Positions 469 through 28,549 of a DNA stretch of 64,000 nucleotides are shown here, in pieces. The first letter of the stretch is position 1. Each line of letters opens with the position of its first letter. Both the position numbers and the translations under genes were made by a program. Under the pieces are notes generated by a model, which made no database searches, was not told the origin of the DNA, and saw only the letters and a list, made by a program, of their open reading frames with translations. Source of the stretch: Paramoeba atlantica (taxonomy: Eukaryota > Protista > Discosea); the NCBI GenBank assembly GCA_977017575.1, contig CDRNVI010000152.1, positions 1-64,000 on the forward strand. Reading direction: 5' to 3'.

Positions 469-589
469 TTGACTTGTTATCAAGACTTACACTATTAGGA
501 AATGTTTGTGGAAAATTGTTTGCCTTCTTCCACTTGAACATTTGAAATAGAGAATAAACAAGAAATTATTAAAAGTGATTTTTTTAATA

Positions 590-3500: not shown

Positions 3501-6500
3501 TTTCATTTTTTTCATATTATTTTTTTGTAATTTCAATTTCTTAATTATGTCTCTATATTGAATGCAATTCCTTAATTTATTTTCTGATTCTCTGATATTT
3601 TTAGAACTTATATTTCAGATCTATGATATTTTTTAAGTTGGTTCAATCAAATTTCTTAATTGTTTTGAATTGATGTATTTAATTTATTTTTTATTTTCTT
3701 TTTTTCACATTAATTTTTTGTAATTTCAATTTCTTAATTATGTCTCCATATTGAATGCAATTTCCTAATTTATTTTCTGATTCTGTGATATTTTTAGAAC
3801 TTATATTTCAGATCTATGATATTTTTTAAGTTGGTTCAATAAAATTTCTTAATTGTTTTTGGTTGATGTATTTGATTTATTTTTTGTTTCATTTTTTTCA
3901 TATTATTTTTTTGTAATTTCAATTTCTTAATTATGTCTCTATATTGAATGCAATTCCTTAATTTATTTTCTGATTCTCTGATATTTTTAGAACTTATATT
4001 TCAGATCTATGATATTTTTTAAGTTGGTTCAATCAAATTTCTTAATTGTTTTGAATTGATGTATTTAATTTATTTTTTATTTTCTTTTTTTCACATTAAT
4101 TTTTTGTAATTTCAATTTCTTAATTATGTCTCCATATTGAATGCAATTTCCTAATTTATTTTCTGATTCTGTGATATTTTTAGAACTTATATTTCAGATC
4201 TATGATATTTTTTAAGTTGGTTCAATAAAATTTCTTAATTGTTTTTGGTTGATGTATTTGATTTATTTTTTGTTTCATTTTTTTCATATTATTTTTTTGT
4301 AATTTCAATTTCTTAATTATGTCTCTATATTGAATGCAATTCCTTAATTTATTTTCTGATTCTCTGATATTTTTAGAACTTATATTTCAGATCTATGATA
4401 TTTTTTAAGTTGGTTCAATCAAATTTCTTAATTGTTTTGAATTGATGTATTTAATTTATTTTTTATTTTCTTTTTTTCACATTAATTTTTTGTAATTTCA
4501 ATTTCTTAATTATGTCTCCATATTGAATGCAATTTCCTAATTTATTTTCTGATTCTGTGATATTTTTAGAACTTATATTTCAGATCTATGATATTTTTTA
4601 AGTTGGTTCAATAAAATTTCTTAATTGTTTTTGGTTGATGTATTTGATTTATTTTTTGTTTCATTTTTTTCATATTATTTTTTTGTAATTTCAATTTCTT
4701 AATTATGTCTCTATATTGAATGCAATTCCTTAATTTATTTTCTGATTCTCTGATATTTTTAGAACTTATATTTCAGATCTATGATATTTTTTAAGTTGGT
4801 TCAATCAAATTTCTTAATTGTTTTGAATTGATGTATTTAATTTATTTTTTATTTTCTTTTTTTCACATTAATTTTTTGTAATTTCAATTTCTTAATTATG
4901 TCTCCATATTGAATGCAATTTCCTAATTTATTTTCTGATTCTGTGATATTTTTAGAACTTATATTTCAGATCTATGATATTTTTTAAGTTGGTTCAATAA
5001 AATTTCTTAATTGTTTTTGGTTGATGTATTTGATTTATTTTTTGTTTCATTTTTTTCATATTATTTTTTTGTAATTTCAATTTCTTAATTATGTCTCTAT
5101 ATTGAATGCAATTCCTTAATTTATTTTCTGATTCTCTGATATTTTTAGAACTTATATTTCAGATCTATGATATTTTTTAAGTTGGTTCAATCAAATTTCT
5201 TAATTGTTTTGAATTGATGTATTTAATTTATTTTTTATTTTCTTTTTTTCACATTAATTTTTTGTAATTTCAATTTCTTAATTATGTCTCCATATTGAAT
5301 GCAATTTCCTAATTTATTTTCTGATTCTGTGATATTTTTAGAACTTATATTTCAGATCTATGATATTTTTTAAGTTGGTTCAATAAAATTTCTTAATTGT
5401 TTTTGGTTGATGTATTTGATTTATTTTTTGTTTCATTTTTTTCATATTATTTTTTTGTAATTTCAATTTCTTAATTATGTCTCTATATTGAATGCAATTC
5501 CTTAATTTATTTTCTGATTCTCTGATATTTTTAGAACTTATATTTCAGATCTATGATATTTTTTAAGTTGGTTCAATCAAATTTCTTAATTGTTTTGAAT
5601 TGATGTATTTAATTTATTTTTTATTTTCTTTTTTTCACATTAATTTTTTGTAATTTCAATTTCTTAATTATGTCTCCATATTGAATGCAATTTCCTAATT
5701 TATTTTCTGATTCTGTGATATTTTTAGAACTTATATTTCAGATCTATGATATTTTTTAAGTTGGTTCAATAAAATTTCTTAATTGTTTTTGGTTGATGTA
5801 TTTGATTTATTTTTTGTTTCATTTTTTTCATATTATTTTTTTGTAATTTCAATTTCTTAATTATGTCTCTATATTGAATGCAATTCCTTAATTTATTTTC
5901 TGATTCTCTGATATTTTTAGAACTTATATTTCAGATCTATGATATTTTTTAAGTTGGTTCAATCAAATTTCTTAATTGTTTTGAATTGATGTATTTAATT
6001 TATTTTTTATTTTCTTTTTTTCACATTAATTTTTTGTAATTTCAATTTCTTAATTATGTCTCCATATTGAATGCAATTTCCTAATTTATTTTCTGATTCT
6101 GTGATATTTTTAGAACTTATATTTCAGATCTATGATATTTTTTAAGTTGGTTCAATAAAATTTCTTAATTGTTTTTGGTTGATGTATTTGATTTATTTTT
6201 TGTTTCATTTTTTTCATATTATTTTTTTGTAATTTCAATTTCTTAATTATGTCTCTATATTGAATGCAATTCCTTAATTTATTTTCTGATTCTCTGATAT
6301 TTTTAGAACTTATATTTCAGATCTATGATATTTTTTAAGTTGGTTCAATCAAATTTCTTAATTGTTTTGAATTGATGTATTTAATTTATTTTTTATTTTC
6401 TTTTTTTCACATTAATTTTTTGTAATTTCAATTTCTTAATTATGTCTCCATATTGAATGCAATTTCCTAATTTATTTTCTGATTCTGTGATATTTTTAGA

Positions 6501-9500
6501 ACTTATATTTCAGATCTATGATATTTTTTAAGTTGGTTCAATAAAATTTCTTAATTGTTTTTGGTTGATGTATTTGATTTATTTTTTGTTTCATTTTTTT
6601 CATATTATTTTTTTGTAATTTCAATTTCTTAATTATGTCTCTATATTGAATGCAATTCCTTAATTTATTTTCTGATTCTCTGATATTTTTAGAACTTATA
6701 TTTCAGATCTATGATATTTTTTAAGTTGGTTCAATCAAATTTCTTAATTGTTTTGAATTGATGTATTTAATTTATTTTTTATTTTCTTTTTTTCACATTA
6801 ATTTTTTGTAATTTCAATTTCTTAATTATGTCTCCATATTGAATGCAATTTCCTAATTTATTTTCTGATTCTGTGATATTTTTAGAACTTATATTTCAGA
6901 TCTATGATATTTTTTAAGTTGGTTCAATAAAATTTCTTAATTGTTTTTGGTTGATGTATTTGATTTATTTTTTGTTTCATTTTTTTCATATTATTTTTTT
7001 GTAATTTCAATTTCTTAATTATGTCTCTATATTGAATGCAATTCCTTAATTTATTTTCTGATTCTCTGATATTTTTAGAACTTATATTTCAGATCTATGA
7101 TATTTTTTAAGTTGGTTCAATCAAATTTCTTAATTGTTTTGAATTGATGTATTTAATTTATTTTTTATTTTCTTTTTTTCACATTAATTTTTTGTAATTT
7201 CAATTTCTTAATTATGTCTCCATATTGAATGCAATTTCCTAATTTATTTTCTGATTCTGTGATATTTTTAGAACTTATATTTCAGATCTATGATATTTTT
7301 TAAGTTGGTTCAATAAAATTTCTTAATTGTTTTTGGTTGATGTATTTGATTTATTTTTTGTTTCATTTTTTTCATATTATTTTTTTGTAATTTCAATTTC
7401 TTAATTATGTCTCTATATTGAATGCAATTCCTTAATTTATTTTCTGATTCTCTGATATTTTTAGAACTTATATTTCAGATCTATGATATTTTTTAAGTTG
7501 GTTCAATCAAATTTCTTAATTGTTTTGAATTGATGTATTTAATTTATTTTTTATTTTCTTTTTTTCACATTAATTTTTTGTAATTTCAATTTCTTAATTA
7601 TGTCTCCATATTGAATGCAATTTCCTAATTTATTTTCTGATTCTGTGATATTTTTAGAACTTATATTTCAGATCTATGATATTTTTTAAGTTGGTTCAAT
7701 AAAATTTCTTAATTGTTTTTGGTTGATGTATTTGATTTATTTTTTGTTTCATTTTTTTCATATTATTTTTTTGTAATTTCAATTTCTTAATTATGTCTCT
7801 ATATTGAATGCAATTCCTTAATTTATTTTCTGATTCTCTGATATTTTTAGAACTTATATTTCAGATCTATGATATTTTTTAAGTTGGTTCAATCAAATTT
7901 CTTAATTGTTTTGAATTGATGTATTTAATTTATTTTTTATTTTCTTTTTTTCACATTAATTTTTTGTAATTTCAATTTCTTAATTATGTCTCCATATTGA
8001 ATGCAATTTCCTAATTTATTTTCTGATTCTGTGATATTTTTAGAACTTATATTTCAGATCTATGATATTTTTTAAGTTGGTTCAATAAAATTTCTTAATT
8101 GTTTTTGGTTGATGTATTTGATTTATTTTTTGTTTCATTTTTTTCATATTATTTTTTTGTAATTTCAATTTCTTAATTATGTCTCTATATTGAATGCAAT
8201 TCCTTAATTTATTTTCTGATTCTCTGATATTTTTAGAACTTATATTTCAGATCTATGATATTTTTTAAGTTGGTTCAATCAAATTTCTTAATTGTTTTGA
8301 ATTGATGTATTTAATTTATTTTTTATTTTCTTTTTTTCACATTAATTTTTTGTAATTTCAATTTCTTAATTATGTCTCCATATTGAATGCAATTTCCTAA
8401 TTTATTTTCTGATTCTGTGATATTTTTAGAACTTATATTTCAGATCTATGATATTTTTTAAGTTGGTTCAATAAAATTTCTTAATTGTTTTTGGTTGATG
8501 TATTTGATTTATTTTTTGTTTCATTTTTTTCATATTATTTTTTTGTAATTTCAATTTCTTAATTATGTCTCTATATTGAATGCAATTCCTTAATTTATTT
8601 TCTGATTCTCTGATATTTTTAGAACTTATATTTCAGATCTATGATATTTTTTAAGTTGGTTCAATCAAATTTCTTAATTGTTTTGAATTGATGTATTTAA
8701 TTTATTTTTTATTTTCTTTTTTTCACATTAATTTTTTGTAATTTCAATTTCTTAATTATGTCTCCATATTGAATGCAATTTCCTAATTTATTTTCTGATT
8801 CTGTGATATTTTTAGAACTTATATTTCAGATCTATGATATTTTTTAAGTTGGTTCAATAAAATTTCTTAATTGTTTTTGGTTGATGTATTTGATTTATTT
8901 TTTGTTTCATTTTTTTCATATTATTTTTTTGTAATTTCAATTTCTTAATTATGTCTCTATATTGAATGCAATTCCTTAATTTATTTTCTGATTCTCTGAT
9001 ATTTTTAGAACTTATATTTCAGATCTATGATATTTTTTAAGTTGGTTCAATCAAATTTCTTAATTGTTTTGAATTGATGTATTTAATTTATTTTTTATTT
9101 TCTTTTTTTCACATTAATTTTTTGTAATTTCAATTTCTTAATTATGTCTCCATATTGAATGCAATTTCCTAATTTATTTTCTGATTCTGTGATATTTTTA
9201 GAACTTATATTTCAGATCTATGATATTTTTTAAGTTGGTTCAATAAAATTTCTTAATTGTTTTTGGTTGATGTATTTGATTTATTTTTTGTTTCATTTTT
9301 TTCATATTATTTTTTTGTAATTTCAATTTCTTAATTATGTCTCTATATTGAATGCAATTCCTTAATTTATTTTCTGATTCTCTGATATTTTTAGAACTTA
9401 TATTTCAGATCTATGATATTTTTTAAGTTGGTTCAATCAAATTTCTTAATTGTTTTGAATTGATGTATTTAATTTATTTTTTATTTTCTTTTTTTCACAT

Positions 9501-10266
9501 TAATTTTTTGTAATTTCAATTTCTTAATTATGTCTCCATATTGAATGCAATTTCCTAATTTATTTTCTGATTCTGTGATATTTTTAGAACTTATATTTCA
9601 GATCTATGATATTTTTTAAGTTGGTTCAATAAAATTTCTTAATTGTTTTTGGTTGATGTATTTGATTTATTTTTTGTTTCATTTTTTTCATATTATTTTT
9701 TTGTAATTTCAATTTCTTAATTATGTCTCTATATTGAATGCAATTCCTTAATTTATTTTCTGATTCTCTGATATTTTTAGAACTTATATTTCAGATCTAT
9801 GATATTTTTTAAGTTGGTTCAATCAAATTTCTTAATTGTTTTGAATTGATGTATTTAATTTATTTTTTATTTTCTTTTTTTCACATTAATTTTTTGTAAT
9901 TTCAATTTCTTAATTATGTCTCCATATTGAATGCAATTTCCTAATTTATTTTCTGATTCTGTGATATTTTTAGAACTTATATTTCAGATCTATGATATTT
10001 TTTAAGTTGGTTCAATAAAATTTCTTAATTGTTTTTGGTTGATGTATTTGATTTATTTTTTGTTTCATTTTTTTCATATTATTTTTTTGTAATTTCAATT
10101 TCTTAATTATGTCTCTATATTGAATGCAATTCCTTAATTTATTTTCTGATTCTCTGATATTTTTAGAACTTATATTTCAGATCTATGATATTTTTTAAGT
10201 TGGTTCAATCAAATTTCTTAATTGTTTTGAATTGATGTATTTAATTTATTTTTTATTTTCTTTTTT
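590..10266. repeat. AT-rich tandem satellite: 193-bp monomers alternating as A/B variants, 386-bp higher-order repeat, about 24 units
   Basis: ATTTCAATTTCTTAATTATGTCTC recurs at 828, 1021, 1214, 1407, 1793 (193-bp step), and exact identity recurs every 386 bp. A/B diagnostics include CTCCAT/CTCTAT, CTGTGAT/CTCTGAT, CAATAA/CAATCA and TTGGTTG/GAATTG. Diverged partial monomers occur at about 590-830. Confidence 0.97.
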
Positions 10267-11799
10267 ATCAAAAATTTTTTTCTCTTTTTTGAATATTTAA
10301 AATCTTATTTTTTTCAAAAATATAAAAATCAAATTGAGAAAAATATTTTTATTTTTAGCCAAATAAAGAAAATTAGTTTTGTTTCTGAAATTGATTTTAG
10401 TTTTTTGTTTGTTTTTGTTGGTTTTTGTTTAATTGCTTCATTTCACCTAAATTCCTTTTCAAGAATTTATTATCTTCTTTTTTAAAAAAAAAAAAATCTT
10501 TTATCTTTCTTGTTAAAGTAATTTCATTGTAAAATTTAAAACTTTTAGTTCATGAATACATTCTTTTTTATGAAACCTTTGAATGAGAAAAGTTGACTCT
10601 TTGTTAAACTTTAATTAAGTAATGTTATTGTTTTTATGAAAAATTGATTTTTAATAATTCAAATGAAAAAGAATGAATAAAAACTTTCACAACTATAAGT
10701 TGTTTTTTTCAAATTGACTAACAACAAAACAGAAAACTTTTCAAAACCTAGGGTAATCTGCTTTTTGGAGTGAAATCAAAGATATGAAAACACTTTACAA
10801 AGATTGAACCTTCTCAAATTGATAAAATTGTTAAGTATGTGTAAAAATGTAATGGAAACCAAGTTTCATTGATCCAAACCACCTTCAAAGATTGGATTAA
10901 TACCACTTTCTCAAAAGCAATCTTTTTCACCTGAATTTATTTCTTTGTTTAGAGTGAAAAACAACTTTTTCTTATTGATTCAGAGTCATTTGAGGTAGAG
11001 AGGTGCAGTTTGTTTGAGGAAAAGCTGAAACAAAATACAAAAAAATTGTAAGAAAAAATTGATGCTACTCACTCTCAATTGATCATAAATATTAATGAAA
11101 CTGATTTTAATTGCAAAAAAGATACTGAAAAACTCAAAGTTGTTTTAATATATAATTGCTCCTATATATATTGTTCCTCTTGAAATGAATTCTATATCAC
11201 TTTAATACTTATAGTTGGTATTATTGGATGGAGTCTTTCAATTTTTGCAACTATCAAAACAATATTCTTTGTTTTAGACTTAAAGGTGATGTATAATTTC
11301 TCAGTAAATGAGTAGTATTATATAATATTATTTTCATCATCAAATATCAATAATAAGTTATTTTCTTATTAAATTGATAAAATTTTTGTTCTAAAAGTAA
11401 TTATAAGATGTTGATTTTTAGAGTTCAAAGATAATACCAAAACTCTTCTTATCTTAAATAGTTGTTTTGTTTATAGTGTTGCAAATTTTCAAGCCTTAAC
11501 TTGTAATTTCACAAAGTAATTCATTTAAAGCATAATTTTTTCTAGTATGGGTTTTGAACATTGTCTTGGTAAGAATTATACAATCTTCAACAATCACAAT
11601 CTTTTTTATCATTGATCTAATACTTTGTATCCCTTTTAAGTAGTCTATAAATTCACCAATATTGTTAAAGCTAAGAGAAATGGTTTCAAACCCACCACAT
11701 ATTTCTCTCTCTTTCCTGAAAACTGCAAAATCTGCACCCCCCAGATGAAGGCCTGTATATCTTGAATCATTATAAAACATTTAAAAGCTTTTGAATTTA

Positions 11800-13148
11800 A
11801 AGTTTTTCTTCTTTTTAGGTTCTTTTTTGATTTGAGTTCTTGGAGGCTAAAGAAGGATTTTATTCTTTCTCAGGATTTTTCTAACAATTTTTATAGTAAA
11901 CTAAACTAATTTAGTTTCTTCTGCACACACTATGAGCCACAAACTTAGTAAGGCAGCACTCACCACAGAGGTTTCTTGTCTAGTAAAATACTTTGAGACA
12001 AGACCACATACATTTTTAGTTTCTTGCCAATTGAGTACTTTCAGCAAAATACATTTCCTTCCTCTTGCTTGAAGAAAACCCTCAACCACAAAGCATTTTT
12101 CCAGTAGATGAGATTATAACTCCTTTTCTCAGTGGCAGAGGCAACAACTTGAATCTTGGTTTGAGAAGTGAAACAACTTGTTTCTTGTAGATAGTTCTTT
12201 TATTAGAAATTTAAGTAAATTCTTCTTAAACTGAGGTTTAATTGCATGAACCAAGTTGTACACCACATACTCAGCTCTTCTTTTCCCCACATACAAGTCT
12301 TTGATTTCAATTGAAATCATTTGAGACATATTGGTATATGTAACACAAGTGGCCTGGCCAAACACAACTTTGGAAGAAAGGCTTTGGGCTGCAATGAAAG
12401 CATTCTTCCACATGGCTTCAATGGAGAGAGGATTCTAATAATCACTCTTCATTGGTGGACAAGAGGTGAAAAGAGCCCAATTAAAAACAATAGGGTGATG
12501 TAGTTGAGGATTTGAGTCCAAAGAGGATAGCATAAAGTAAGAACAGAGGTTTTAGTGATGGCATAGGCACCCAGGGCTGAGCAAATGGATTTCCACATCA
12601 AAGAGGTGATAGATTTTAGGATCAACTTGAATCTCACTAAGTATTCCATACATGGAGTTAGATAGATATTGACCATCCTCACTCTTGAGTAAAAATTCCC
12701 ACCTCTCTTTTTAATTGCTGTTCCAACTTTCTTCATCTTTTGGACCACCTTCTCTCAATCTTTGAGAGAAGATAACCATTTATTCAATCTCACTCCCAGT
12801 TTCATTACCACAGTAATTGAGTCTTGCCATCTCAGACCAGGGGCCTACTGGTTTGTAAGACTCAGTTGAGAGGACAAAGCACTTATTAAAGTTCAGTTTA
12901 GCTTCAGTTGCTTCTTTATATTTCTTAAAGGTTGGAGTGAGAGAATTGATGGTTTCAACTCTCTGAAGCACTATCCCCAAATCATCCATAAAGCCTGACA
13001 GATCTTGGAGGTTGTGTTTCTTCTTCAAACTCACAAGGAGGATGTCAAACACAATCACAAACAATAGAAGGGAGATTGGGCATCTTTGTCTAACTCCTGT
13101 CCAGCTTTGGATTGATTCTTTGGTGCCTGCCCTTTTGGATTCACTAAT
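11800..13148 (-). mobile_element. Non-LTR retrotransposon (LINE, L1/Tx1-like) ORF2 3' part, decayed
   Basis: Fragments GTKESIQSWTGVRQRCPISLLLF (GVRQGCPLSPLLF motif), GFMDDL (YxDD) and LNFNKC, then a C-terminal FL..L.TR..L....C.LC zinc-finger-like segment (12129..12413). Stops and frameshifts are present. Confidence 0.85.
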
Positions 13149-14256
13149 CACTTTGGGACAAAAAAATTTCTTGGGAGAGAACATAGCCAGAGGTCAACCT
13201 GCATTTTTTGGCTCTGAAACACGACTGTGGAAGTGATGTGGCAAAGTGGATAGGCAAAAAAGACCCCAAAAAAACGCGGAAAGGCGAAAAGATATGAACC
13301 CAATTGCCAAAAAGGATGATAATTGGGTTCTTTTTCACTCAAAATTTTTGGGTGGGATCAAGATGGCGTGGGAGAGGAGGAGGTGTTCTTTTTCAACTTC
13401 TCGAAATGGAAAACAAACTGATGATCGAAGATACTTGGGAGACTGAAGAATATCTCCATTTGATTCAGAAAGAGCAAAACACTTCAAATAGAAGAAAAAA
13501 AGCGAAAAAAATAGCAGGACCTGGTGGAAACAAACAAGACGAGATGACAATGCTGATGAATGAACAAATGGTTCATTGTGTTCTGGCACAAAGAATCCCA
13601 AAGACCCTCGAAAAATTGGTAAAAAACACTCTCATGAGTTTTTTTTTTTTCTAAAGATTCTTTTTTTCACTCACACACAAAATTCTTTTAGTGGAGGGGA
13701 AAAGGTTGAAAACATTGGTGCTCTCGCCGGGTTTTCATTCAACATTTCCCTGAGGCCCTCTTTTTCTTTTTGGTCGATAATAACGTTACCAAAACCAAAA
13801 CAAATCGAAAAACTGGGAAGAAAGAATTTTGGGGACAACTTGATCTCCCTTCACAAATCCGAAAGAAGTTGGGGGTCATTGCCTACCAGAAAATTTTTCG
13901 GGATGGGTCCACTGCAACAGTGACTGGCCCTGTGAAAATCAAATTTTCACAGGAAAAAAAATTGTTGTCGATTTCTTATGGCTATTTTCTTCAAAACCAA
14001 GATGGAAGGCCAGCAAGGGGGATGGCTGAAAACTGGAAACTCCCAGTAGTTGCCCCAGTTGTTGTTGTGAAAGAGGAGGCTCTCGACAAATAGTGAAAAA
14101 TAAATTATTTTTTTTATCCGAGGCACCGCCTTTTTTTTTTTTTTTTCTCTTGAGAAAAGACCAAAAAACAAAGCAGCTGCTTTGTTTCGTGACCCACTGA
14201 AGAAGAAGAAAAAGGAGGAAAAGACAGGGTTGTGTGTTGTGTTGTGTTGTGTTCAA

Positions 14257-17200
14257 ATGGCTGAGAGAGGAGTCTCTAGAAAGAAACAGTTGGTGTGTAG
14301 TCATTTGGTGCAGTTTTGTGTGAGAAGGAATGAGAAAAGTTCATGTGGAGTTTTCAGTTCAAAACAAGCCAAAAGTATTCATCAACGTTTACGCCATTAT
14401 TGTCCAGATGAATGTAAGAGGTGTCAAAAAGAACAAGGTTTGAATTCTTTTCCTCTTCTTCGATCTTCAGTTTCAGAGAGTAGTTGGGTGGGTGGGTTTA
14501 AAGTTTCTGTTTGTCTTTTTTCTTTTTGGTGGGTTTGAAAGTGTTGCTATTCTGAAAGAATTTGGTGTTTGGAATTAGAAAGAGCTGCTGCTGCTGTTGA
14601 TCAAACTGCTGAGAGTATGATGGGTATGGGAGCAATTCCTCAAGTTTTTCCACAACAAGGACAACAGGAACAGGTCTTTTTTTTTTGCAAAGAGAAGAGT
14701 CTTTTTATTCTTCAAGTCAAGTTAAGTGATGACACTGCAAGAAAAATAATTTTTGTTTTTTAGACTAGAAGAAGAGGTGGTACCACCTCTGCTTTTTCCA
14801 CCACCACCACCACACTCCCCATTGCTGCTTCCAACAGTACCTTTACCACCACCACCACCACCGCCACTTTTACTCCTCCTGTGACTGCTTCTTGCCATCA
14901 CCGTAGTTCCTCAGATGAGAAATTCCTCCGAACCAACTGGGTGAATGAAGCTGTGGGATCACTTGGTTTTGAAAATCCAACCTCTTTCTTGGCTCAGCTT
15001 TTAAGTGATTGCAACACTTCTCAGATTGTTGAAGTCTTAGAGAAACTCTTTCAGTTGGATGATGGAAATGCAAGAAGGGGGAGGAGTGGTTTTTCTCAGA
15101 AACAACAGATTAGAAACTTTTTTGGACTCCCAAATGATGCACAAGAAGTATCAAAAAAATATCGGTGTATGAAAAAACAGGAAAAGGCAGAGTTTTTTGG
15201 AAGATTGTTTCTAAGATTGGGTCTCACTAGGTATCAGATTCGAGGTCTTAATTCTGAACTGGGTTGGGAATTTTCAGATTGTCAGTTCAAGTATTGGTTC
15301 CAAAAACTAAAAGATCAGATTCCCTTGGAAAAAACAGACCATGGTTGGAGAGTGAATGATGTTGAGGGTGAAGTGAATAGAATGTTTGATGATGATTGGG
15401 AGGGCAACAAGTATCCTCTTTGGGATGAATATGATCGGGTGAACAACAATATGAATCACCAAGAAGAAGCAACTATTGGTGGTGTTGCTAATGCAGAGGA
15501 AAATTTAAAGCTGAAGATGATCTTTTCTGCTGATGGGGGTTCTTTTGATCGAAGGAACAAAGGAGTTGTTGTGAAATTGATACGTGGTGATGAAGAGTGG
15601 TGGGCAAAAGGAACTCGAACTTGGAGAGCAGTCCTCAATTTAAGTTTGGGTGTCTTTGTAATGAAAGAGAGCTTTAAAACCTTTCAAGAAGAGATATCTC
15701 CGATTTATCAGATGATTTACCAGGTAAGTATTTTTTTGTAATGCTTTTAATTTAATTTAATATTAATATTAATATTAATTTAATTTAATTTAATTTTTGA
15801 CTTTTTTAATTTTTTTTTTTAAAAAAAATTAATTTAATTTTTCGTTTGATATTCATTTCATTAATTTTCTTCTCTTTTTTACCTACTTTTTCTTTCCCCT
15901 CTCTCCTCTCTCTTTCTTCTCTTGGGACTCTTTTGTGATTTTTATTAGAAAAAGATTCAGTATTCAGATTTCAAGGAATGAACAATTTCATTCACTGAAA
16001 CACATGACATGTTATGCTCTTCACTTCTTTTTGGTCATGGTGGCAAATCAATATTTCATCACACATCAAAAAGGCCTTGTTGGCGTTGTAACATTGTTCG
16101 AGATAAGGATGATAGAGGGCTTTGGGATGATCATACAAAGGTTTGCAGCTTCTTCCAAATTTTATTAAAATAATTTACTCCATAAAAATGAATAAGAAAA
16201 TAAAAGAAGAAAAATTTCAAAAATAATTAAGAAAAAAAAAATAATTTCAACTAAAAAAAATAATTTTGTTTTTACTAACATCCACCCCCCACCCATATTT
16301 TTTTGTCAGCATCACTTTTGGGATAATCAATTTGGTGGTTATAGTATCTTTGAAAGTTTTGCTGAGGCTGATGATGAACTGGCAATTAATCTTGTTGGTA
16401 ACTTGGATCAAAAACATACATGGTGAACTTTAGAACAAAAAAAAAGCGATTTTCAATTGGTTCAGGGCTGGGAGGGATCCAAGAACAGTCTTGCAAAATT
16501 TATGAATCAAATGGGAATGAGAAATCCTCCAATAACTCCATCGCAACCATGGGACCACAACTTGGACTTGATCCACTTTGTTGAAGGGACTTGTAGAAAT
16601 GTTGTTAAACTTTTTGTGATGGATGTTTCTCTGTGTAAGTTAAAAAAAGAATATTTTGAAAATAATACTTTTGAAAAGAATAAAATTCTCATTGAAAAAG
16701 AAAATAGATTCACCTCATGATTTAACGATTTGAATTGCTTTTTATCTCATTGGAGGAGTGAAAATTCCAGATCCATCACAAAAGGTATTCAACCTTTGGG
16801 AGAGAATCAAAAAAGTAAGACCTAGTTACGTTCAATGGATCAAGATTTTAAGGGGTTTTCCCAATAAAACTGGTTGGTTTATTCTTCTCTTCTTTCTTTG
16901 ATATCTTCTTCATTTTTAAAATTTTATAAATAATTATAATAAAAAAAAAATAATATTTTTTGAAATACTTTTTTTTTTTTTTGAATATCTTAATTATTAC
17001 ATTCTCTCTCTTTATTTTTCTACAACTGACAATATATTTTTGTTTTCAAAAAAAATCATTTATTTTAGCCTGAAAAGGAGCTGTTGATTTTCTTTATGAT
17101 GAATATTTTATTAAATTAGCTGAATGGATGGATTCAAATCTCCAAAGTGAAAAAGTCAAAAGCATTTCACATGAACAAGAGGAACCAGAAGTCCTTCCTT

Positions 17201-20200
17201 TTTCGGCGTTTAATGCAGCTTTGTTGAATGCAAAAGGTTGATTTACTATTTCTTGTTTTTTCCAAACAAACAAAAACTCTCTTTTTTTGATCAAATAATT
17301 TTATTCAGAAAAAAAAAATTTCAAAAGTTTTTTCATAATTTTTGTTATTCAGATTTTGATTTATCGATCATCGATGTTTTAATTGGAGATTCAGAACGAG
17401 ACACATTTGAACCAGAATATGAGTTTCTAACGTTGACTTATGACATTCTCCAAATGGCTTCAGCCCCATATCAACTCTCTCATCAGAAGATCAATATTGT
17501 TCGAAAGGCTTCCCTTCTTTGGGGAAGAAAATATAACGAATGTAATTTCTCCCCTCTTTATTGGGCTCCTTATTTACATACCCTCCATGATCACCTTCAT
17601 TGGGAGTTATTGAGGTTTGTTTTTTCTTTATTATTTTTGTGGTGTTGAAATTTTTTAAAAATGATGGTTCATAATATCCATCCTTCTTTTTTGATTTTCA
17701 GTTTTTCTGCAATACAGAATAAAGTCACTCCCCTCTGACATACACAACACAGATACCCTCTTCCACGAAGAGCAGGATTTGCAATTGAAGGAGCCATTCT
17801 TGCAGCTCGTTCTCATTGTTGGGCCCAAAAGCCATTTGGAGGTAGACATAGGCAAGGAGTGAGCAGTCAAGAGAAAGGAACTTTTTCAATCCAAATGAAT
17901 GCCTTGATCAAAGGGATGATGGAGCGAAGTGAGGCATTGAGATCAGAGAAAAAACTTGAAAACAGAGCAAGCAAAATAAGTGCAAATGAACCTTCTCGAC
18001 TTATTCGTGAGGTATTTTTTGTTGACCCTTTTTTCCCCCAAATTTGTTGTTTTCTGAAAATTTCAAATTATTTTTTTTTAAAATAAAATATGAAAACTCA
18101 AAAGCAGATTTCTAATAATTCTTTCCTTCTACCAAAATCAGGGTCACTCCTCAAAACTTGTTCCCTCTGGTTCTTCAAAGCAACCCCCCCTCCTCAAAAG
18201 AACAAAATTACCTAATTCTGTTGCCTGCAAATCAGCTTATCAGTATGCTTCTTTGTGTTGCCAGCCCCTTCAGGATACTTTGGATCCAATAACAAATTAT
18301 CAATCCTCTTCTCATCGTCACAACATCCGCTCTTTCAACCCTTCATCACACTACATGTCTTCCCAAACCACTCCAATTAACCTCTCTTCCCCTTCCCCTT
18401 CCCCTTCCCCTTCCCCTTCCTCTTCCCCTTCCCCTTCCCCTCCCCCTTTCCTTTCTTCTCTTTCTCAATCACCAGGAAAAAATTCTCAATTTTCTTTTTC
18501 CTATTCTTCCTTTCCTCTACCATCCCAAACATCCCAAAGTAATTTCTCTTCTTCCACTCATCTCTCAGGAAGTCCCTGTTCTTCACAGTCTTCTTTTCCT
18601 TCTCTTTCTGGTTCTTGTCCTTCTCCTTCTCTTTCTCCTTCTCCTTCTCACCAACCCTATACATCTTGGCCAACCATGTGTCAATCATCTCAATCATCCC
18701 AACAATCCTGTATGGGAAGATTTTCTCTTTCTCCTCAGCAGCCTTCTCCTTCTCCTTCTCCTCCTCTTTCTTGCCCTTCTGTTTCTCCTTTTTCTTCTTT
18801 TCCTTCTCGCCAATCCTCTCATCAACCACTGCCTTTTCCTTCTCCAACTCCTTCTTCCCAAACCACATCCCCACATCCCCATGTTTCTTTCAGGGAGTTT
18901 CCCTTTTCTTTTTCCCCGTCTTTTGCATTTGCGACTCCCTCTCCCCCCCCATCATCAACCCCCAAAATGGTGGGTAATTTCTCATCTTCATTTACTCATT
19001 TCCCAGTTCATTCTCATCATCCTTCTTTCTCTCCAAGTTCTCGTTTTTCACACTCACCATCTTCTTCATCTCCCTTATTGCCTTTTTCTCCTCAGTCATC
19101 TTCTTCTCTTTCTTTTTCTCTTTGTTCTCCTTTCTCTTCTCCTTCTATTTCTCATTGTTCTTCTTCTTTCTCTTTTTCTCCTTCTCCTTCTCCCCCTCCA
19201 CCCTCTCTTTCTTCTTTCTCTCCTTTTGCTCCTTCCACTCCTTTCTCAGGAAGTTCCAGGAACTCTTCACACTCTTCTTTTCCTTCTCTATCTTCTACTT
19301 CTCGCCCCTTCTCCTCTCCCTGTTCTTCTCCTTATTTCTCTCCTCTTCTCTCTTCTCCCTCTCCTTCATCCTCTCCCTCTTCCTCTCCCCTTCTCTCTCC
19401 CTCCCTCTCCCCCTCTTCCTCTCCCTTTTCCTCTTCCTCTCCTCTTTCCTCTCTCTCAGTGAGAAATGCTCTTAAACTCGTTGAAATAAACGAACACCAA
19501 GCATTTCTTGCTTTGGAGCAAGAATATGCGCACATGATGACAGAAATACTCCCAAAGGTTTTTGTGATTTTTTTTCTTTCTCATTGAGAGGAATGTTTCA
19601 TTTTTTCATTTTTAGATTGATGAAGAAATTGAAGCTGGCCATTGGGACCCAATGGCTCGGGTTCAATGTATTCAAAAGATCAAAAAGCTGTCTTCTGCAA
19701 AATCAAACACCATCTACAATCATCTGATTTCTAATGCTATTCTTGTGCAAAATATGTGGTTCTTAGAGTTCCCAAACTAGGAAAAGATGAAGAAAGCAAA
19801 AAAATGGTTGAAGGAGACCGAAGTACCAATGAAAGACAACCTCAAGAATGTTTTGATTCCTGGTAAATGGGTGGAGGAGGAAGTTTGTTTTTTTTTCTTT
19901 TCTTATTTTTCATTATTTTATCATTGTTTTTATCATCTCATACCCAATATTTAGGTGGTTTCTTGGTACTGTCAGAGTTTGAAATCCCGTTTTGTAGGAG
20001 CTCTCTTGGGATCTTTTCTTTTGGATCCACAAGTAAAAACTGATCAAAAACTCTCAAATCTTAGTCAAGTATTTTTTTTTCAAAAAATTTTTTTCAGAAA
20101 TTAGAAAAAAGATTGGCAGCCAGAACATTTTTTTACCTATCAGTAATTTTCATTTTTCAGGTGATGATTTGGCAAAAAACAGGTTTTTATTGCATTTGTA

Positions 20201-20865
20201 ACCCAGGAAATCACTGGGTTGTGATTGATGGAAAAATCGATGAGGCAAACAGAAAGGTTGAATTAACACTGTATGACAGTCTGAAGCAACAGCAAACAAA
20301 TGACAAACCTCTCCAAGGTTTTTTGTGTTTTTTTTGTTCTTCTTTCCCTTTATTCTTCCAGTTACTGAAACTTTTTTATTTTTTTTTAATATTTTCAACA
20401 AAGATATTCAAGCTCTTTTAGAAAAACATTTTCAGGAAAGGTCTGAAGATAAGTTATCATTTCAAAGAAAAATTGCAAGTAAGGGGCCTGACCAGCAACA
20501 GGTTTTTTTTCTTGACTACCTGAATATAGATGGAGAATCTCTTGATTGTTATGTTTTATTTTTCATCCAAAACTGATTTCTTTCATTTTTTCTTTCAGAA
20601 TGTCACAGAGTGTGGTGTTTTGGCTTTATTTACATTCTATTGTCTTACTCAGTCATATCCTCTGACTTTTACCCTTGCTGATTGTCCTGATATTCGTGAA
20701 CATATTTTCTACAGAGTTTATGAGGAACTTCTTCCAGGTCAAACAGAAAAAAGGAAAAGGATGGATGAAGAGCGATTAAATGAACCAAGAAGTACTGGAG
20801 TTCAAAGATCGAGAAGAAGCCAGCTGGCAACAAAGAGAAGGAAAACAACAAATCCATGGATTTGA
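14257..20865 (+). pseudogene. Multi-exon (about 15 exons, about 1600 aa) gene: N-terminal Cys/His finger, CMC-type DDE transposase, Ser/Pro linker, Ulp1/SENP (C48) protease; 6 premature stops
   Basis: Hand-spliced GT-AG exons (approx. 14257-14490, 14579-14673, 14764-15723, 15949-16140, 16310-16632, 16708-16814, 17069-17228, 17353-17613, 17702-18010, 18142-19557, 19616-19880, 19956-20068, 20161-20317, 20403-20490, 20599-20865). Motifs in order: FSADGG, HDMLC..GHGG..PCWRC, DLIHFVEG, YLHTLHDHL, GFAIEG. TACTAAC branch point near 16273. TGA at 15979, 16424, 16718, 17071, 17736; TAG at 19778. Confidence 0.75.
19830..20740 (+). other. Ulp1/SENP-like cysteine protease domain (spliced, C-terminal part of the transposon gene)
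   Basis: The spliced sequence reads NVLIPGKWVEEEVVSWYCQSL...CNPGNHWVVIDG...LTLYDSL...GPDQQQNVTECGVLAL...DCPDIREHI. This supplies the His (HW), Asp (YDSL), oxyanion Gln and Cys (ECG) of the C48 family in the expected order. Confidence 0.8.
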
Positions 20866-21151
20866 TAATAAAAAATTACATTTCTTAAGAATTGCTCTTC
20901 TTCTTATCCCTTTCAAGTATTTTTTCTTTTCTTCTTTTCTTGGGGGGGGGGGGGGGGGGGGGGGAACCTGTAGACAATAAAATTTTTGGATTGTCTACAA
21001 GTCAGATTTTTTTCTCTTAATAAATTTGGTCCCCCACTCAACCCTCTCAACTTAAACTTCAGTTTTTCAAGACTGTTTTTTTATTTACTAAGTTTTATTT
21101 ATTTTTTACAGCTTTTTTTTTCTCAGACTTTTTTGCTTTTTTTGGGGTTGT

Positions 21152-22015
21152 TCATGACTCCATTGTTTCTCTTACCATTTCACGCTTTGGGATTTTGCAT
21201 GCCCGCAAATAAGAACGATGGATAATGAAAAGACCAACCATTCGATCATCTTCAGAAGGGCTTGATGGATCTTCTTCACCATAATACCCACGAGTTCTGT
21301 GACATAACTGGTCAGTATCCAAAAGGAGAACATCCCCAATTCGAAGACCAAAAGCAATATCCAAACCACCAATCTCCAGTCCACCAACTTGATGTTTCCC
21401 AATATGGATCATAACTAAGACAGAGAGAAAATCATTTTGGTCATAATGCATTTTGGCTGATCCTGCAGGGCACATGAATAAATGGAACATCCCAAACTGT
21501 CCCTCAACATCGATTAATCCGTGTTTTTCCAGACAATTCCAAACATCAGGATGATACTTTTCCACCAATCCGGAAAGCTGCTTCCCAATTGATGTCAGAA
21601 CAGAATCGAGAACTTTTTCGACTTCGACCTCGTAGTGGCCTCCTTTTCCAGCAGGATGAAAGGTATAATGTCCTTGTTGGGTCCATCCACCACAAAACAT
21701 AAAAGCTCTCTCCCCTCTTTTTTTGTCAACTGAAGAGTCCCAATGTGTCTCTTGGCATGACAGCAAAGCTACTTGGAATTGTTTCATTTCTTCCTCAGTG
21801 AAAACCGATTTGAGGTAGTGTCCACGATAGCACTCCGTAACACGAGAATTTTTTTGGCGTTGGACCTCGAGGTACACAGACTCATTAATTATGAGACAGT
21901 GCTTCGAATGTTCCCAGTTTGGTTTTGTGGTTGCTTTCAGAGTTTTGTTCACAACTCTGAGTCCACAGCCTCTCTTTCTTTTTTTCGGCTCAGGATCATC
22001 AGGGTTTGAGGCCAT
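21152..22015 (-). CDS. TET/JBP-family 2-oxoglutarate/Fe(II) dioxygenase-like protein (287 aa, intact, intronless)
   Basis: Open frame from ATG 22015 (MASNPDDPEPKKRKR, NLS-like). It contains MHYDQND (HxD, 21440-21448), GGLEIGGLDIAFGLRIGDVLLLDT, LCHRT (distal His) and DRMVGLFIIH (2OG-binding Arg). This is the TET/JBP double-stranded beta-helix layout, as in compact protist and fungal TETs. Confidence 0.8.
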   Translation of the reverse strand: MASNPDDPEPKKRKRGCGLRVVNKTLKATTKPNWEHSKHCLIINESVYLEVQRQKNSRVTECYRGHYLKSVFTEEEMKQFQVALLSCQETHWDSSVDKKRGERAFMFCGGWTQQGHYTFHPAGKGGHYEVEVEKVLDSVLTSIGKQLSGLVEKYHPDVWNCLEKHGLIDVEGQFGMFHLFMCPAGSAKMHYDQNDFLSVLVMIHIGKHQVGGLEIGGLDIAFGLRIGDVLLLDTDQLCHRTRGYYGEEDPSSPSEDDRMVGLFIIHRSYLRACKIPKREMVRETMES

Positions 22016-22532
22016 TTTACGAGGTTGTTGTTTTGTACAAAAAAGGTTCCCAGTATTAAGCGGGCGCTGGTGAATCTCTTTTACAACTTCCACAACTCAA
22101 AAGAAACTGTTCTGAAAAGAAAAAGGAGGGGGAAAAAGAAAAAAAGAACCATGACGCAGAAAACCGTGTCGTGGAAAAAAAATTTTTCACAAGTTTTTTT
22201 TTGATGCTCTAAAAGGAAGCTTAGCACAGAAGCTTTTTTTTAAAGAGCTTTGAAAGGAACATAATCCATCTCTTCAAGCTAGTGAAAACAAATGCACCCC
22301 ATTCCTGTTTTCTCATTCCCCGAAAACGATGTCACAGAACTGGCAAGAATGGGGGCTAATTAAATCAGGGCTGTGAAAAAAAATAATTGTTTGTCTTTCA
22401 TTTCTTTCATCACCTTGAAAAAACTCCGCATTGCAGAAAGTCATTCTTGACCTTTTCAGACTTTTTGTTTCTGGAAAAGTCAATAGCAGGCAACAGAATA
22501 CTACCCTGCAATGAATTTTAACCCAAAGTGAT

Positions 22533-23150
22533 TTAGCAGCCAGGTTACATATTCACAAAGGACTTTCTCAACAATATAGATTGCTTGAGGGGGGCATTCA
22601 GACTTTTGAGAATATGAAGGAGTGCATCACAATTCACATAATCATATGCCTTGCAAAAGTCTGTTTGGAGGAGAGTCACATCTTTTCCCTCTGCCAAAGC
22701 TTTGTAAAAAGAGTTATATACTGATTCTACTGCTTCATTAATTGATCTCCTGAAAATTCATAATTTCACCTGCTTGTTGAATTAATTTTACTCACATATC
22801 AAAGTACTTCTCTTGTGTTGCCTTATACAAAAAGAAGGGAATACCATCAGGTCCTGTGCTGGTGTTGTTGGTTCTCTGAAGTAGTTTATCAACTTTCTTC
22901 CTATCCACATCATGTTTCTCAACTGGAAGGAAATGAGGTTGGTGGTCAGCAATCAGTTCATCAAGAGAATCTTTGTTATATGGTCTTTCTGTGCTGAGAA
23001 AACCCTCTCAAAAATCCTTAATTGCTTTTTTAACCACATTATCATTATGAGAGATCACCCCATCCATGATTACATGTTGTTTTTAACAAAAAGATGAAGA
23101 CCATCTTTGCTTCAAGTTAACAGCTCTGTCAGGTCTGTTTGAATGAGTGT
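22533..23150 (-). mobile_element. 5' part of the interrupted LINE RT (domains 0-3), decayed
   Basis: The reverse strand reads ...TNNTSTGPDGIPFFLYK... and ...DVTLLQTDFCKAYDYVNCDALLHIL... (DFxKAYD motif). In non-LTR RTs this motif precedes the GVRQG motif found at about 13100. Confidence 0.8.
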
Positions 23151-23246: not shown

Positions 23247-23385
23247 GGAGACTAGAGTGATATTTTTTCTTGAAATTGTCAAGGGAAAGTTCCATCCTCT
23301 TGAAATTCCTGAAATGGGCTTGTTCAAGTTTCAACCTCTATCAGGTTTTGGAGTGAAAACTGTTGGTTTAATGCTTTACATGAGA
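23247..23385 (+). pseudogene. Short piggyBac transposase fragment
   Basis: IFFLEIVKGKFHPLEIPEMGLFKFQPLSGFGVKTVGLML closely matches VILFLEIVEGKSHPPEMGLPKFQPPSGSGAKTVGLML in the 26753..27325 ORF. Confidence 0.75.
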
Positions 23386-23710
23386 GTGAGCTTAAGCTGC
23401 ACTTGCAATCATAGTGTTTTTAGAATTGAAGTGACTTCAAATATTTCTTTTGAGCTTTTAAAAAAAAATCTGATGTTATATCCATATGTTCACTCTTGTG
23501 GTCTCTTTTCTGATTTGTTTGTTTTTTGGTTGAATGAAGATGGTAAAGGTTGAAGAAATGGAACAAAAAAGAAAAAGAAAAAGGAAAAAAAGTGTGTGTT
23601 TATTATTCTTTTGATGATTAAATTGTTTGATTTGAAAGAAAAGGTTATGCATAGAAGTTGAAGGTGATGATGTTGTGAAAGGGAAAAAAAGAACCTGTTT
23701 TGTCAATTGA
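23385..23710 (+). repeat. Dispersed repeat of about 330 bp, copy 1 (copy 2 at about 46815-47150)
   Basis: GAGCT(T/C)AAGCTGCACTTGCAAT...GAAGTGACTTCA...GTTCACTCTTGTGGTCTCT...GGTTGAATGA...AAAAAAAGAACCTGTTTT is shared between the two loci. Confidence 0.85.
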
Positions 23711-26010: not shown

Positions 26011-28549
26011 TTAAACTCTCCAGAAAATTGGGTTCCTTCCAGGCCAAAAGACTAATTAGGCCTCTATTTTTGACTCTTTTTTTGAAGCCACTGGTGGGTG
26101 GAGGGGAGATTTTTTTTGATAAACTTTTTAATAAAGATCTTTTAAACAAGAATATCAAGAAATATTTGTCCAAATATTGTTTTTTGAAAAAAAAAATTGA
26201 GTCACTAAAAAAAAAAAAACATCATTTTTCAAAAGGACTAATTAGTCCTCAGTCATGTGCCTGCTCATATGGTCAGCAAAGCAACCTGAACAAAAAATGA
26301 GTGTTTGATCACAGGAGCAATAGGTTTGAACTTTCTTTGTACAATTTGTCCCATTGCATCCTACTCTTCTGGTACTCTTGTCTGGCTTCAGTCCAATTAC
26401 CATTTCACCAAACTCCAGCAAAGTTGGGCTTGATCATCAGATGATGTTCTACATGAGTTGGGAGTGGTATTCGCAGGTTATAGCTTTCATCCAAGGGATG
26501 ATTCTGAGAGAGTAGACCTTGGGCAACCTCAAAACGAAATTCTGCAAAGGAGAGCTCTTTGGCTTGGGGGAAAAAGTGCTGAAATATGAGGAAGGCATTG
26601 ACTTCCACAACTACAAGAATGAAAGCAAACTGCCTGTGGACCCATTTTTTGGTCTTCCAGGAACTCTCCAAGGAGAGAGAACCTTGCCTCAGTTGGTTGT
26701 GATCATCCACACAATGCCTGGTTTGATAGTAAAAGTCAAGAGGCTGAGTATATCACAGGGAGAGTCTTTGGCCTTCAAGCTTGCAATTTTGTAGGCAACC
26801 AGTGGGAAAAGAAGTTCCCCAGGTATTAATCATTATAGAAGAGTGATGAACATCTTGGAAAGCCTCCACATAGAATTTATAACCTCTCAGAGATCCTTTC
26901 TTCACTTTCACACATAACCAGGTTCCTTCTCCTTGAGGTGTGTAACAATCTCTTTCCCTGGAATTCCTTTGGGCCAATATCATTTTTTCTTCACAACTGA
27001 AGTACAATACAATCCCTTCTCCAAGAAGTTGAATACAACCTTCCAACACACAAAAACCACTATCCAAAGCAACTACTCGACCAGTTCCCCAAATTCCCTC
27101 AGTCATTCTAAGCATTAAACCAACAGTTTTCGCTCCAGAACCAGATGGAGGTTGAAACTTGGGCAGGCCCATTTCAGGAGGATGGGACTTTCCTTCCACA
27201 ATTTCAAGAAAGAGTATCACTTTAGTCTCCCCACAACCAATTGTATGATATTCATTTCCAAAAGGATGAGGTTTCCTCTGAACAAACATCCAACCAGGAG
27301 CCCATTTACAGAACCACACCACCATAGACTCATCTAGACAGACCTGTCAACTTGGAACAAAGATGGTCTTCATCTTCTCATTAAAAGCAGCAATCAGGGG
27401 TCGAATTTCCCACATACAGTCTGTGTAAGAGGGTTTTGCAGAGAGAGGAGCAAGTTTAAGAGAGGAGACAATCATATCAAACCAATTTCTACTGATATAT
27501 TTCCTAAGATAAGGCAGTGTACCATGCAAGGAAGATCCAGCTGAATCCTTTGAAATTCGAAAAAAATCCCTTCTTTTATGTCCTGGGTAGAAAGACATAA
27601 TCTGGCACAAGGCAATAAAATCAAGCATTTCAGCTTCAGTGAAGTTCAAAGAATGGTTAAACTCATTTGTTGCTTTCAGCACATCAGTTTTTAGAAAGGT
27701 TAGAGGTAGAACTTGGAGAAAAATATCGAGGGGAGTGGGGACATAAACAGCATCAAAGCGAATTCTTGTACAGGCCTTGAAGTCTTGTGCTCCTATCACA
27801 GCACAAGCATCAGTTGTTGAGGAAGACCACTCAGAAACACAAAGGAAAGATCATTTTCAACGAGTTCTGCTGCATTGTCTTCCCCTTCCTCCTCAATATC
27901 AGAGCAAGATTCAGTATCTTCATCATCAGTATCAGATGAGCCCAAAACAGGCACAGAGGTTGTTGATGCCTGGGATGAACCAGAACTTGATCCTCCTGAG
28001 CCAGAAGAGGATGATGAAGATGAAGATGGATGAGTTGAAGTCCCACAACCCTCTGAGACATCTGCTTCTCCAACAAACTTCAAATTTTCAGGAAGAGCCA
28101 GAAGGTAATCATTCTGAAAGACAGGAGAATGAAGCAAAACTACCATCTGAGATTTCCTGTCATAGTTCTGAAGTTCCACCCTTTTCACCCTGAGTGAAGA
28201 GAGAGATGCTCCTTGATATTGGTCACCAAAATGTTTCCTTAGAAGATGAGAAGGGCAAAGGTTCACAGCTTTGCAGAACCAAATAGTATCCTCCTTCAAT
28301 TCTTCAATTCTTGGAGAAGTTGATCTAGAACTCATTTTTCTCACCACTGTAACTTTTTTCATTCAGACTTTCTGAGAAAGGCATTGTGATGAAAATCAAG
28401 AAAAAACCTCAAAGAAACACAAAAGAAAGTAAAAAAAAAAAAAAAAAAGTTCAAAAATGTGCTTTATTTTGGCCAACAAACAGGAGCCTAATTAGGCCCA
28501 AAAAGACTAATTAGGCCCCCCTGGAAAGAACCCGATATAATATTGTTAA
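26011..28549 (-). mobile_element. piggyBac-like DNA transposon, decayed
   Basis: TTAA at 26011-14 and 28546-49. Subterminal inverted GGGTTC(C/T)TTCCAGG near 26030 and 28520. Repeated palindromic CTAATTAG boxes near both ends. The exact termini are imperfect. Confidence 0.65.
26290..28362 (-). pseudogene. piggyBac (PGBD/DDE_Tnp_1_7-like) transposase pseudogene
   Basis: Acidic N-terminus, PTPLDIFLQ, CLDESMV (D1), RKPHPFGNEYH, ALDSGF (D2), KKK*YWPKG, MDDHNQLRQ (D3), WKTKKW and VNAFLIF. Stops and a frameshift are present. Confidence 0.88.

Follow-up and report, generated by a model that had tools for sequence, protein, structure and literature searches.

The locus at positions 21152–22015 of the window (the whole stretch of 64,000 nucleotides that was analysed) raises the question of what an open, intronless dioxygenase-like frame is doing inside a mobile element whose neighbouring transposase gene carries six nonsense codons, and whether this frame has been kept by a selection of its own. 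We regard it as probable that this is the gene for a compact Fe(II)/2-oxoglutarate dioxygenase belonging to the TET/JBP family, and that a 9.4-kb cut-and-paste transposon carries it as cargo.

A run without stops extends on the minus strand from position 22093 down to 21155. It includes an ATG at 22015 and is closed by a TGA at 21152–21154, which gives a gene of 287 codons without an intron. Under a model of the local base composition, a run of 313 codons without stops has a probability of approximately 3e-10, and as the same genome (45.7 Mb in 248 contigs) holds 12 intact relatives, a chance frame is excluded and the frame is a real gene. The motifs that the first-pass annotation had reported (PKKRKR, HYD...H...R and GGL..G....GDVLL) could all be located in the protein, namely PKKRKR at residues 10–15, HYD at 190–192, GGLEIGG at 211–217, GDVLLLD at 227–233, the distal His239 and Arg258, and the codon of this catalytic arginine indeed reads CGA. 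The description of the frame as uninterrupted and intact, however, holds only in part. All 287 codons are open, but the terminating stop is itself the product of a CGA>TGA change at 21154, by which a conserved tail of 19 residues was lost. In a second copy of the element on contig C149, as well as in a related assembly, the frame continues for 19 further codons (RTTPKKAKK...), and the C149 allele retains the full frame of 306 residues. The severed former tail is still readable in the window at 21095–21151 on the minus strand, where 18 codons (TTPKKAKKSEKKKAVKNK) are followed by the original stop. A tail of the same type (RTxP, then a stretch of lysines) is conserved across other dioxygenase lineages, and the full-length form has basic stretches at both ends of the protein, i.e., the N-terminal PKKRKR and the lysine-rich C-terminal tail.

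The copy in the related assembly lies on an ENA contig that is 96% identical to window positions 20479–22533 and includes the same element end and the dioxygenase gene. Its codon 18 has become a stop (GGA>TAA), and 22 other C>T or G>A changes are present; because of this stop the gene caller placed the start of the annotated protein at an internal methionine.

Taken by itself, the window protein matches neither a Pfam family (E-values up to 10 considered; the Tet_JBP threshold is not reached) nor any solved PDB chain, so its assignment to the TET/JBP family rests on transitive homology and on the fold. A word-index protein search yielded only four relatives, and a profile search of 1.84 billion representative proteins yielded 139, almost all of them unnamed proteins from short metagenome contigs. 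An alignment of 50 relatives served as the basis for the profile, for the analysis of residue conservation and for the final structural model. Among these 50 aligned members, 21 match the Pfam family PF12851 (Tet_JBP), with a best E-value of 3.6e-16. When the 50-sequence profile was compared with solved chains, Tet1 from Naegleria gruberi (NgTet1) ranked at the top (5cg8, E 3e-9; 4lt5, E 1.5e-8), followed by gamma-butyrobetaine dioxygenase (E 2e-4) and by CcTet from Coprinopsis cinerea (E 2.4e-3). An AlphaFold2 model built from five sequences was unusable (pLDDT 48.6); the model built from 50 sequences reached a pLDDT of 90.4 and a pTM of 0.88. Its fold is a double-stranded beta-helix with N-terminal additions of the TET type. 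A Foldseek search of the PDB returned CcTet, TET2, NgTet1 or CMD1 for all of the first 26 matches (E 3e-9 to 2e-6), and AlkBH3 ranked after the TETs with an E-value of 1.8e-5, which is three to four orders weaker. In VIA-align, Z-scores were 18.9 for NgTET1, 18.7 for TET2, 18.1 for CcTet and 15.4 for CMD1, compared to 14.8 for AlkBH3, and the top clusters of an ESM Atlas search carry Tet_JBP as well. The early proposal of a compact TET/JBP-like dioxygenase, together with the comparison to NgTet1 and CMD1 that had been suggested as its check, is thereby borne out, since profile and fold group the protein with NgTet1, TET2, CcTet and CMD1, and a grouping with AlkB or P4H was not seen.

Six residues are invariant among the 50 aligned relatives (Gly109, His190, Asp192, Gly227, Asp228 and Arg258), while His239 and Asp195 are each present in 49 of them. 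According to the profile alignment, His190, Asp192 and His239 correspond to His229, Asp231 and His279 of NgTet1, the Fe(II) triad, and Arg258 corresponds to Arg289, which contacts the C5-carboxylate of 2-oxoglutarate. Asp195 and His266 align with NgTet1 Asp234 and His297, the contacts to N4 and N3 of 5-methylcytosine, respectively (roles of the NgTet1 residues: PMC7854593; PMC11040006). Both elements of the characteristic spacing are present, with the cytosine-contacting Asp/Asn three residues past the Asp of the HxD motif and the His eight residues past the Arg. His266 is found in 32 of the 50 relatives, and ten have Gln at this position. Position 240, directly beside His239, is Gly in 41 of the relatives; Arg also occurs there, and it is Arg that the window copy has.

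The limits of the transposon were derived from a comparison with the insertion on contig C149 (C149:582670–592474). Both are 98–99% identical over window positions 13146–22530 and unrelated beyond those points, which places the whole 9.4-kb copy at 13149–22530. Its terminal inverted repeats are CACTTTGGG on the left (13149–13157) and CCCAAAGTG on the right (22522–22530), both given on the plus strand. The dioxygenase gene adjoins one of the element ends and converges on a multi-exon transposase-side gene. As it lies between the terminal repeats and has moved with the element to C149, it is transposon cargo. The C149 copy is flanked on both sides by CTTTC, a 5-bp duplication, and no target-site duplication was found for the window copy (flanks CTAAT and ATTTA; 2, 3 and 5 bp examined). 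Only these two full copies are readable. Contig C137 contains a 99.9% identical colinear duplicate of the window locus, the adjoining satellite included, and most likely represents the other haplotype. Across the genome, the right element end occurs at five places and the left end at eight. In contigs from other samples with the same organism label, three or more distinct flanks were seen past 22530/22531, among them the locus of a related element (D-type, see below); these may be further insertions or an insertion polymorphism, which such contigs cannot prove.

The transposase-side gene spans 14200–20865 on the plus strand, with an approximate start. Its last two coding pieces (20065–20862, plus strand) appear Ulp1-like, as they include the motifs NHWVVIDG...LYDSL and then QNVTECGV, i.e., His, Asp, Gln and Cys motifs in the order of Peptidase_C48. 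This is a reading at the level of motifs: the two pieces have no Pfam or PDB match, and BLASTP found no similarity between them and the C48 protein of the B-type element described below. When the transposase exon pieces were searched singly, no Pfam match was obtained for either copy and no PDB match either, and a search against the ESM Atlas gave no usable match. By language-model features, RAG1, DUF1280 and Transposase_21 are favored (0.92–0.93), which is a lead only. The KDZ transposase profile PF18758 found no match in the genome, and control genomes were likewise without signal, so that this result carries no weight. The CMCT group (EnSpm/CACTA, Mirage, Chapaev, Transib and their kin) is characterized by 5′-CA..TG-3′ ends and duplications of 2–5 bp (PMC12730594), and its transposases by DDE, C(2)C and H(3-4)H motifs. 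The CAC...GTG ends of the element, together with the one 5-bp duplication (seen in the C149 copy only), are compatible with the group as defined in that paper. A CWRC motif as well as DLIHFVEG are visible in the transposase pieces of the C149 copy.

The window copy is located in a repeat-rich zone and borders on a satellite. This AT-rich satellite (approximately 19% GC) occupies window positions 579–10281 and is 99.8% identical to itself at an offset of 386 bases and 92.6% at 193 bases, which suggests a 193-base unit whose pairs form a higher-order repeat; this array is also found alongside the twin on C137. To the left of the element, a reverse-transcriptase-like frame (FMDDLGIV) was noticed at 12780–13184 on the minus strand, and to its right, frames at 23257–23553 and 26753–27325 resemble pieces of a piggyBac transposase. 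Judged by reading the translations, the element would thus be flanked by relics of other transposons. The transposase-side gene of the C149 copy contains a 399-base insertion at the point matching window position 19180. As this insertion matches window 46286–46660 at 95%, it is taken to be a small mobile element. A further short repeat, at window 45195–45617, is found again next to the C149 copy with 97% identity.

Six lineages of window-type dioxygenases are present in the genome, which are 35–59% identical to the window protein, all intact, and borne on at least two kinds of transposon. In a tree, these six lineages interleave with the metagenome proteins, so the family is old and has undergone no recent expansion in this genome. 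Synonymous sites have reached saturation between lineages (pS 0.70–0.84), and pN amounts to 0.29–0.53. The ratio of dN to dS among genomic copies, which had been recommended as a check, is informative at one level only: between lineages it lies at 0.28–0.33 where computable, but within the lineage there are too few changes to be informative. At the level of the protein family, these sequence comparisons clearly point to long-term purifying selection. Two of the other carriers can be compared with the window element directly. The D-type element (C164:41017–49287; C143:39844 onward) has a terminus which is 94–96% identical to that of the window element. The shared part comprises the last 314 bases (22217–22530) of the region that extends, on the minus strand, upstream of the dioxygenase gene to the element end (22016–22530). 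The D-type transposase side is also shared over 4.2 kb at 96% identity, with one exon reaching 99% protein identity. Its dioxygenase, in contrast, is only 40% identical to the window protein, and its Ulp1-like pieces only approximately 35%. As terminus and transposase side are shared but the dioxygenase is not, the cargo end must have been exchanged between elements. The B-type dioxygenase (C148:20000–29999 and C145:4000–13999), which shares 59% identity with the window protein, converges on a gene for Peptidase_C48 (Pfam, E 3.7e-22) in the position that is occupied by the Ulp1-like pieces in the window. Upstream beside this C48 gene, TNP-like RNase H (4e-4) and RNase_T (1.5e-3) are weakly matched, and the B-type carrier is, by these sequence matches, a different, P-element-like transposon.

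A comparison of the two full copies reveals how the window copy has decayed. They differ by 85 substitutions. Transitions account for 73 of them, and 40 of these lie at CpG. At the 73 transitions, the T/A allele belongs to the window copy 65 times and to the C149 copy eight times. Of the C/G positions within CpG sites, 12.8% have mutated in the window copy, compared to 0.92% of all other C/G positions, a 14-fold difference. Such a CpG-biased C-to-T decay is the usual trace of 5-methylcytosine. Many of the changes outside CpG follow a T (TCT, TCC, TCA). Measured against the C149 copy, the transposase-side gene exhibits exactly the six nonsense codons that had been counted before, namely CGA>TGA at 15979, 16731, 17071 and 19725, TGG>TGA at 16426 and CAG>TAG at 19778. 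These six, by which the transposase was disabled, as well as the loss of the dioxygenase tail, result from the C-to-T changes of the window copy, most of them at CpG. Within the dioxygenase frame, 32 sites are variable among the four compared copies, and all but one of these are C/T or G/A. The nearly clean C149 copy and the CpG-decayed window copy thereby offer a natural comparison within one genome.

At first sight, a frame that is open and has its catalytic residues intact while the adjacent transposase carries six stops could be a host or domesticated gene, selected independently of a dead transposon, and the first-pass annotation had considered it as possibly still functional or under such selection. 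The distribution of changes argues against this. Of the 921 bases of the dioxygenase frame, six have undergone a C>T or G>A change (0.65%), compared to 65 of 9385 in the whole element (0.69%). Since the gene decays at the element-wide rate, neither continued function nor independent selection is supported for the window copy. With the C or G allele taken as ancestral, a polarity that the related assembly supports at four of the sites, four of the six changes alter the protein, one of them being the nonsense change: R17C, R155H, G240R and R288 to stop, besides two silent ones. At the CpG rate of 12.8%, 0.38 TGA codons are expected among the three CGA codons of the frame and one is observed, so the frame remains open because it offers few vulnerable codons, just as the annotation had itself cautioned when it called the lack of stops statistically weak. 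Together with the location of the gene inside the element ends and its joint travel with the element to C149, this makes a host gene very improbable. The window copy is slowly decaying, shows no selection of its own, and has already lost its tail. The one sequencing run presumed to be RNA contained none of this stretch and so has no bearing on transcription. Still less credible, and in fact extremely improbable, is a membership in another branch of 2-oxoglutarate oxygenases, such as AlkB-type repair enzymes, prolyl hydroxylases or TauD-type enzymes, with a merely TET-like appearance. It could draw on the weak WelO5 or TauD Pfam matches of some of the 50 family members and on an early 10-sequence profile, whose sole match was gamma-butyrobetaine dioxygenase (E 0.005, through the distal-His motif). 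This affinity was overturned by the deeper 50-sequence profile, which ranks NgTet1 first by at least four orders of magnitude, and TET structures top both fold rankings with 215–249 aligned residues in VIA-align versus approximately 180 for AlkB.

Within the TET/JBP family, the substrate has to be considered separately. The 14 times faster mutation of CpG sites in the element, as the trace commonly left by 5-methylcytosine, speaks against the idea that the same fold serves another substrate or chemistry here, be it the hydroxylation of thymine (JBP), the demethylation of N6-methyladenine (CcTet), the formation of an ascorbate-dependent adduct (CMD1), or an activity on RNA. We consider this idea unlikely, but several observations would agree with it. 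The genome contains an MT-A70 gene, and no C5 cytosine methyltransferase was found in it by six-frame searches with PF00145 and TIGR00675, which an intron-rich gene can escape. Furthermore, the dioxygenase clade is too divergent for direct detection by Pfam, and the function of divergent transposon-borne TETs is left open by Kojima (2025; PMC12730594). The active site again favors the cytosine reading: Arg258 aligns with the arginine for the C5-carboxylate of 2-oxoglutarate, which CMD1 does not use, and Asp195 with the Asp234 of NgTet1 that bonds to N4 of 5-methylcytosine. An Asp or Asn at this position blocks N6-methyladenine, and CcTet has Gly there (PMC11040006), while docking indicates that an Asp at this position disfavors thymine (PMC7854593).

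From the aligned residues we therefore infer a 2-oxoglutarate-dependent 5-methylcytosine oxidase as the preferred reading. In the mechanism we propose, the basic stretches at both ends of the enzyme would permit its entry into the nucleus, where it would flip out 5-methylcytosine and then oxidize it. This oxidation could counter a methylation-based silencing of the enzyme's own element, as has been proposed for the TET-carrying transposons of fungi. As the compact enzyme of 306 residues is easy to express, the role of transposon-borne TETs becomes directly testable.

The preferred reading leaves a puzzle, in that the CpG decay resembles that of methylated DNA and yet the gene of a cytosine methyltransferase was not found in the genome searches described above. 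If it is truly missing, either an unknown enzyme marks the cytosines of the host, or the dioxygenases act on a different base. That one of these two applies, and that transposon and host here confront each other through an unfamiliar DNA-modification system, we regard as quite unlikely. The assembly also includes two classical Tet_JBP loci, each a long intron-free frame with a GC content of 45–46%: JBP1 (C3:216687–220160, with a twin on C30), which combines Tet_JBP with DB_JBP1 (E 6e-55), and JBP2 (C39:573202–576660, with a twin on C40), which combines Tet_JBP with SNF2 and Helicase_C. By their sequence features, these contigs probably belong to the genome of a kinetoplastid partner within the assembly. 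As JBP1 and JBP2 would then be kinetoplastid genes, the host's own TET/JBP set, as found here, would consist of the transposon-borne family only.

Among the known systems, the kinetoplastid JBP1 and JBP2, with both genes in the same assembly, have the Tet_JBP oxygenase superfamily in common with the window protein. Unlike it, they are large, contain DB_JBP1 or SNF2 domains, hydroxylate thymine and are not close to the compact family. CcTet (7VPN, 8JKK, 7W5P) provides the top Foldseek match (E 3e-9; Z 18) and is likewise a member of a transposon-linked expansion. Yet Asp195 is replaced by Gly in CcTet, so that N6-methyladenine can be accommodated (PMC11040006), whereas the window family has Asp in 49 of 50 members. 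The closest counterpart is NgTet1 (4LT5, 5CG8, 5CG9), which is also a compact single domain of approximately 300 residues without a Cys-rich domain. It is the best match by profile (E 3e-9), aligns in fold over 215 residues (Z 18.9, rmsd 3.2), and shares HxDxxD, the distal His, the Arg and, eight residues further on, a His. The identity between both proteins is, however, only 14–17%, and the window protein alone does not retrieve NgTet1. Moreover, the window-type gene is the cargo of a transposon, and its product has basic stretches at both ends.

As for the element as a whole, transposons equipped with their own TET-type enzyme have, to our knowledge, been characterized as complete elements in fungi only. 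Fungal transposons with a TET/JBP gene were reportedly already described by Iyer et al. in 2014, and it has been proposed that TET-carrying transposons erase the methyl marks by which they are silenced. TET/JBP-carrying transposons occur in Basidiomycota and Pezizomycetes (Kojima, 2025; PMC12730594), and our literature searches yielded no report of such elements in amoebae. The window element resembles its fungal counterparts in that a TET/JBP gene lies next to the transposase inside the terminal repeats of a DNA transposon, in that several transposon lineages with related dioxygenases exist per genome, and in the proposed role as an escape from methylation silencing. Its ends fit the 5′-CA..TG-3′ pattern of Kojima's CMCT elements, and the duplication seen in the C149 copy only would fit their range of 2–5 bp. 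It differs from the fungal elements in its host, which appears to be an amoeba-like protist, in a dioxygenase clade that is otherwise represented by metagenome contigs only, and in a transposase-side gene which seems to end in a Ulp1-like part. Elements of this kind are already known, and the novelty lies in the lineage of the host and in the clade of the dioxygenase. The element extends the pattern of TET-carrying transposons to an amoeba-like protist, with a clade of dioxygenases that standard domain scans miss.
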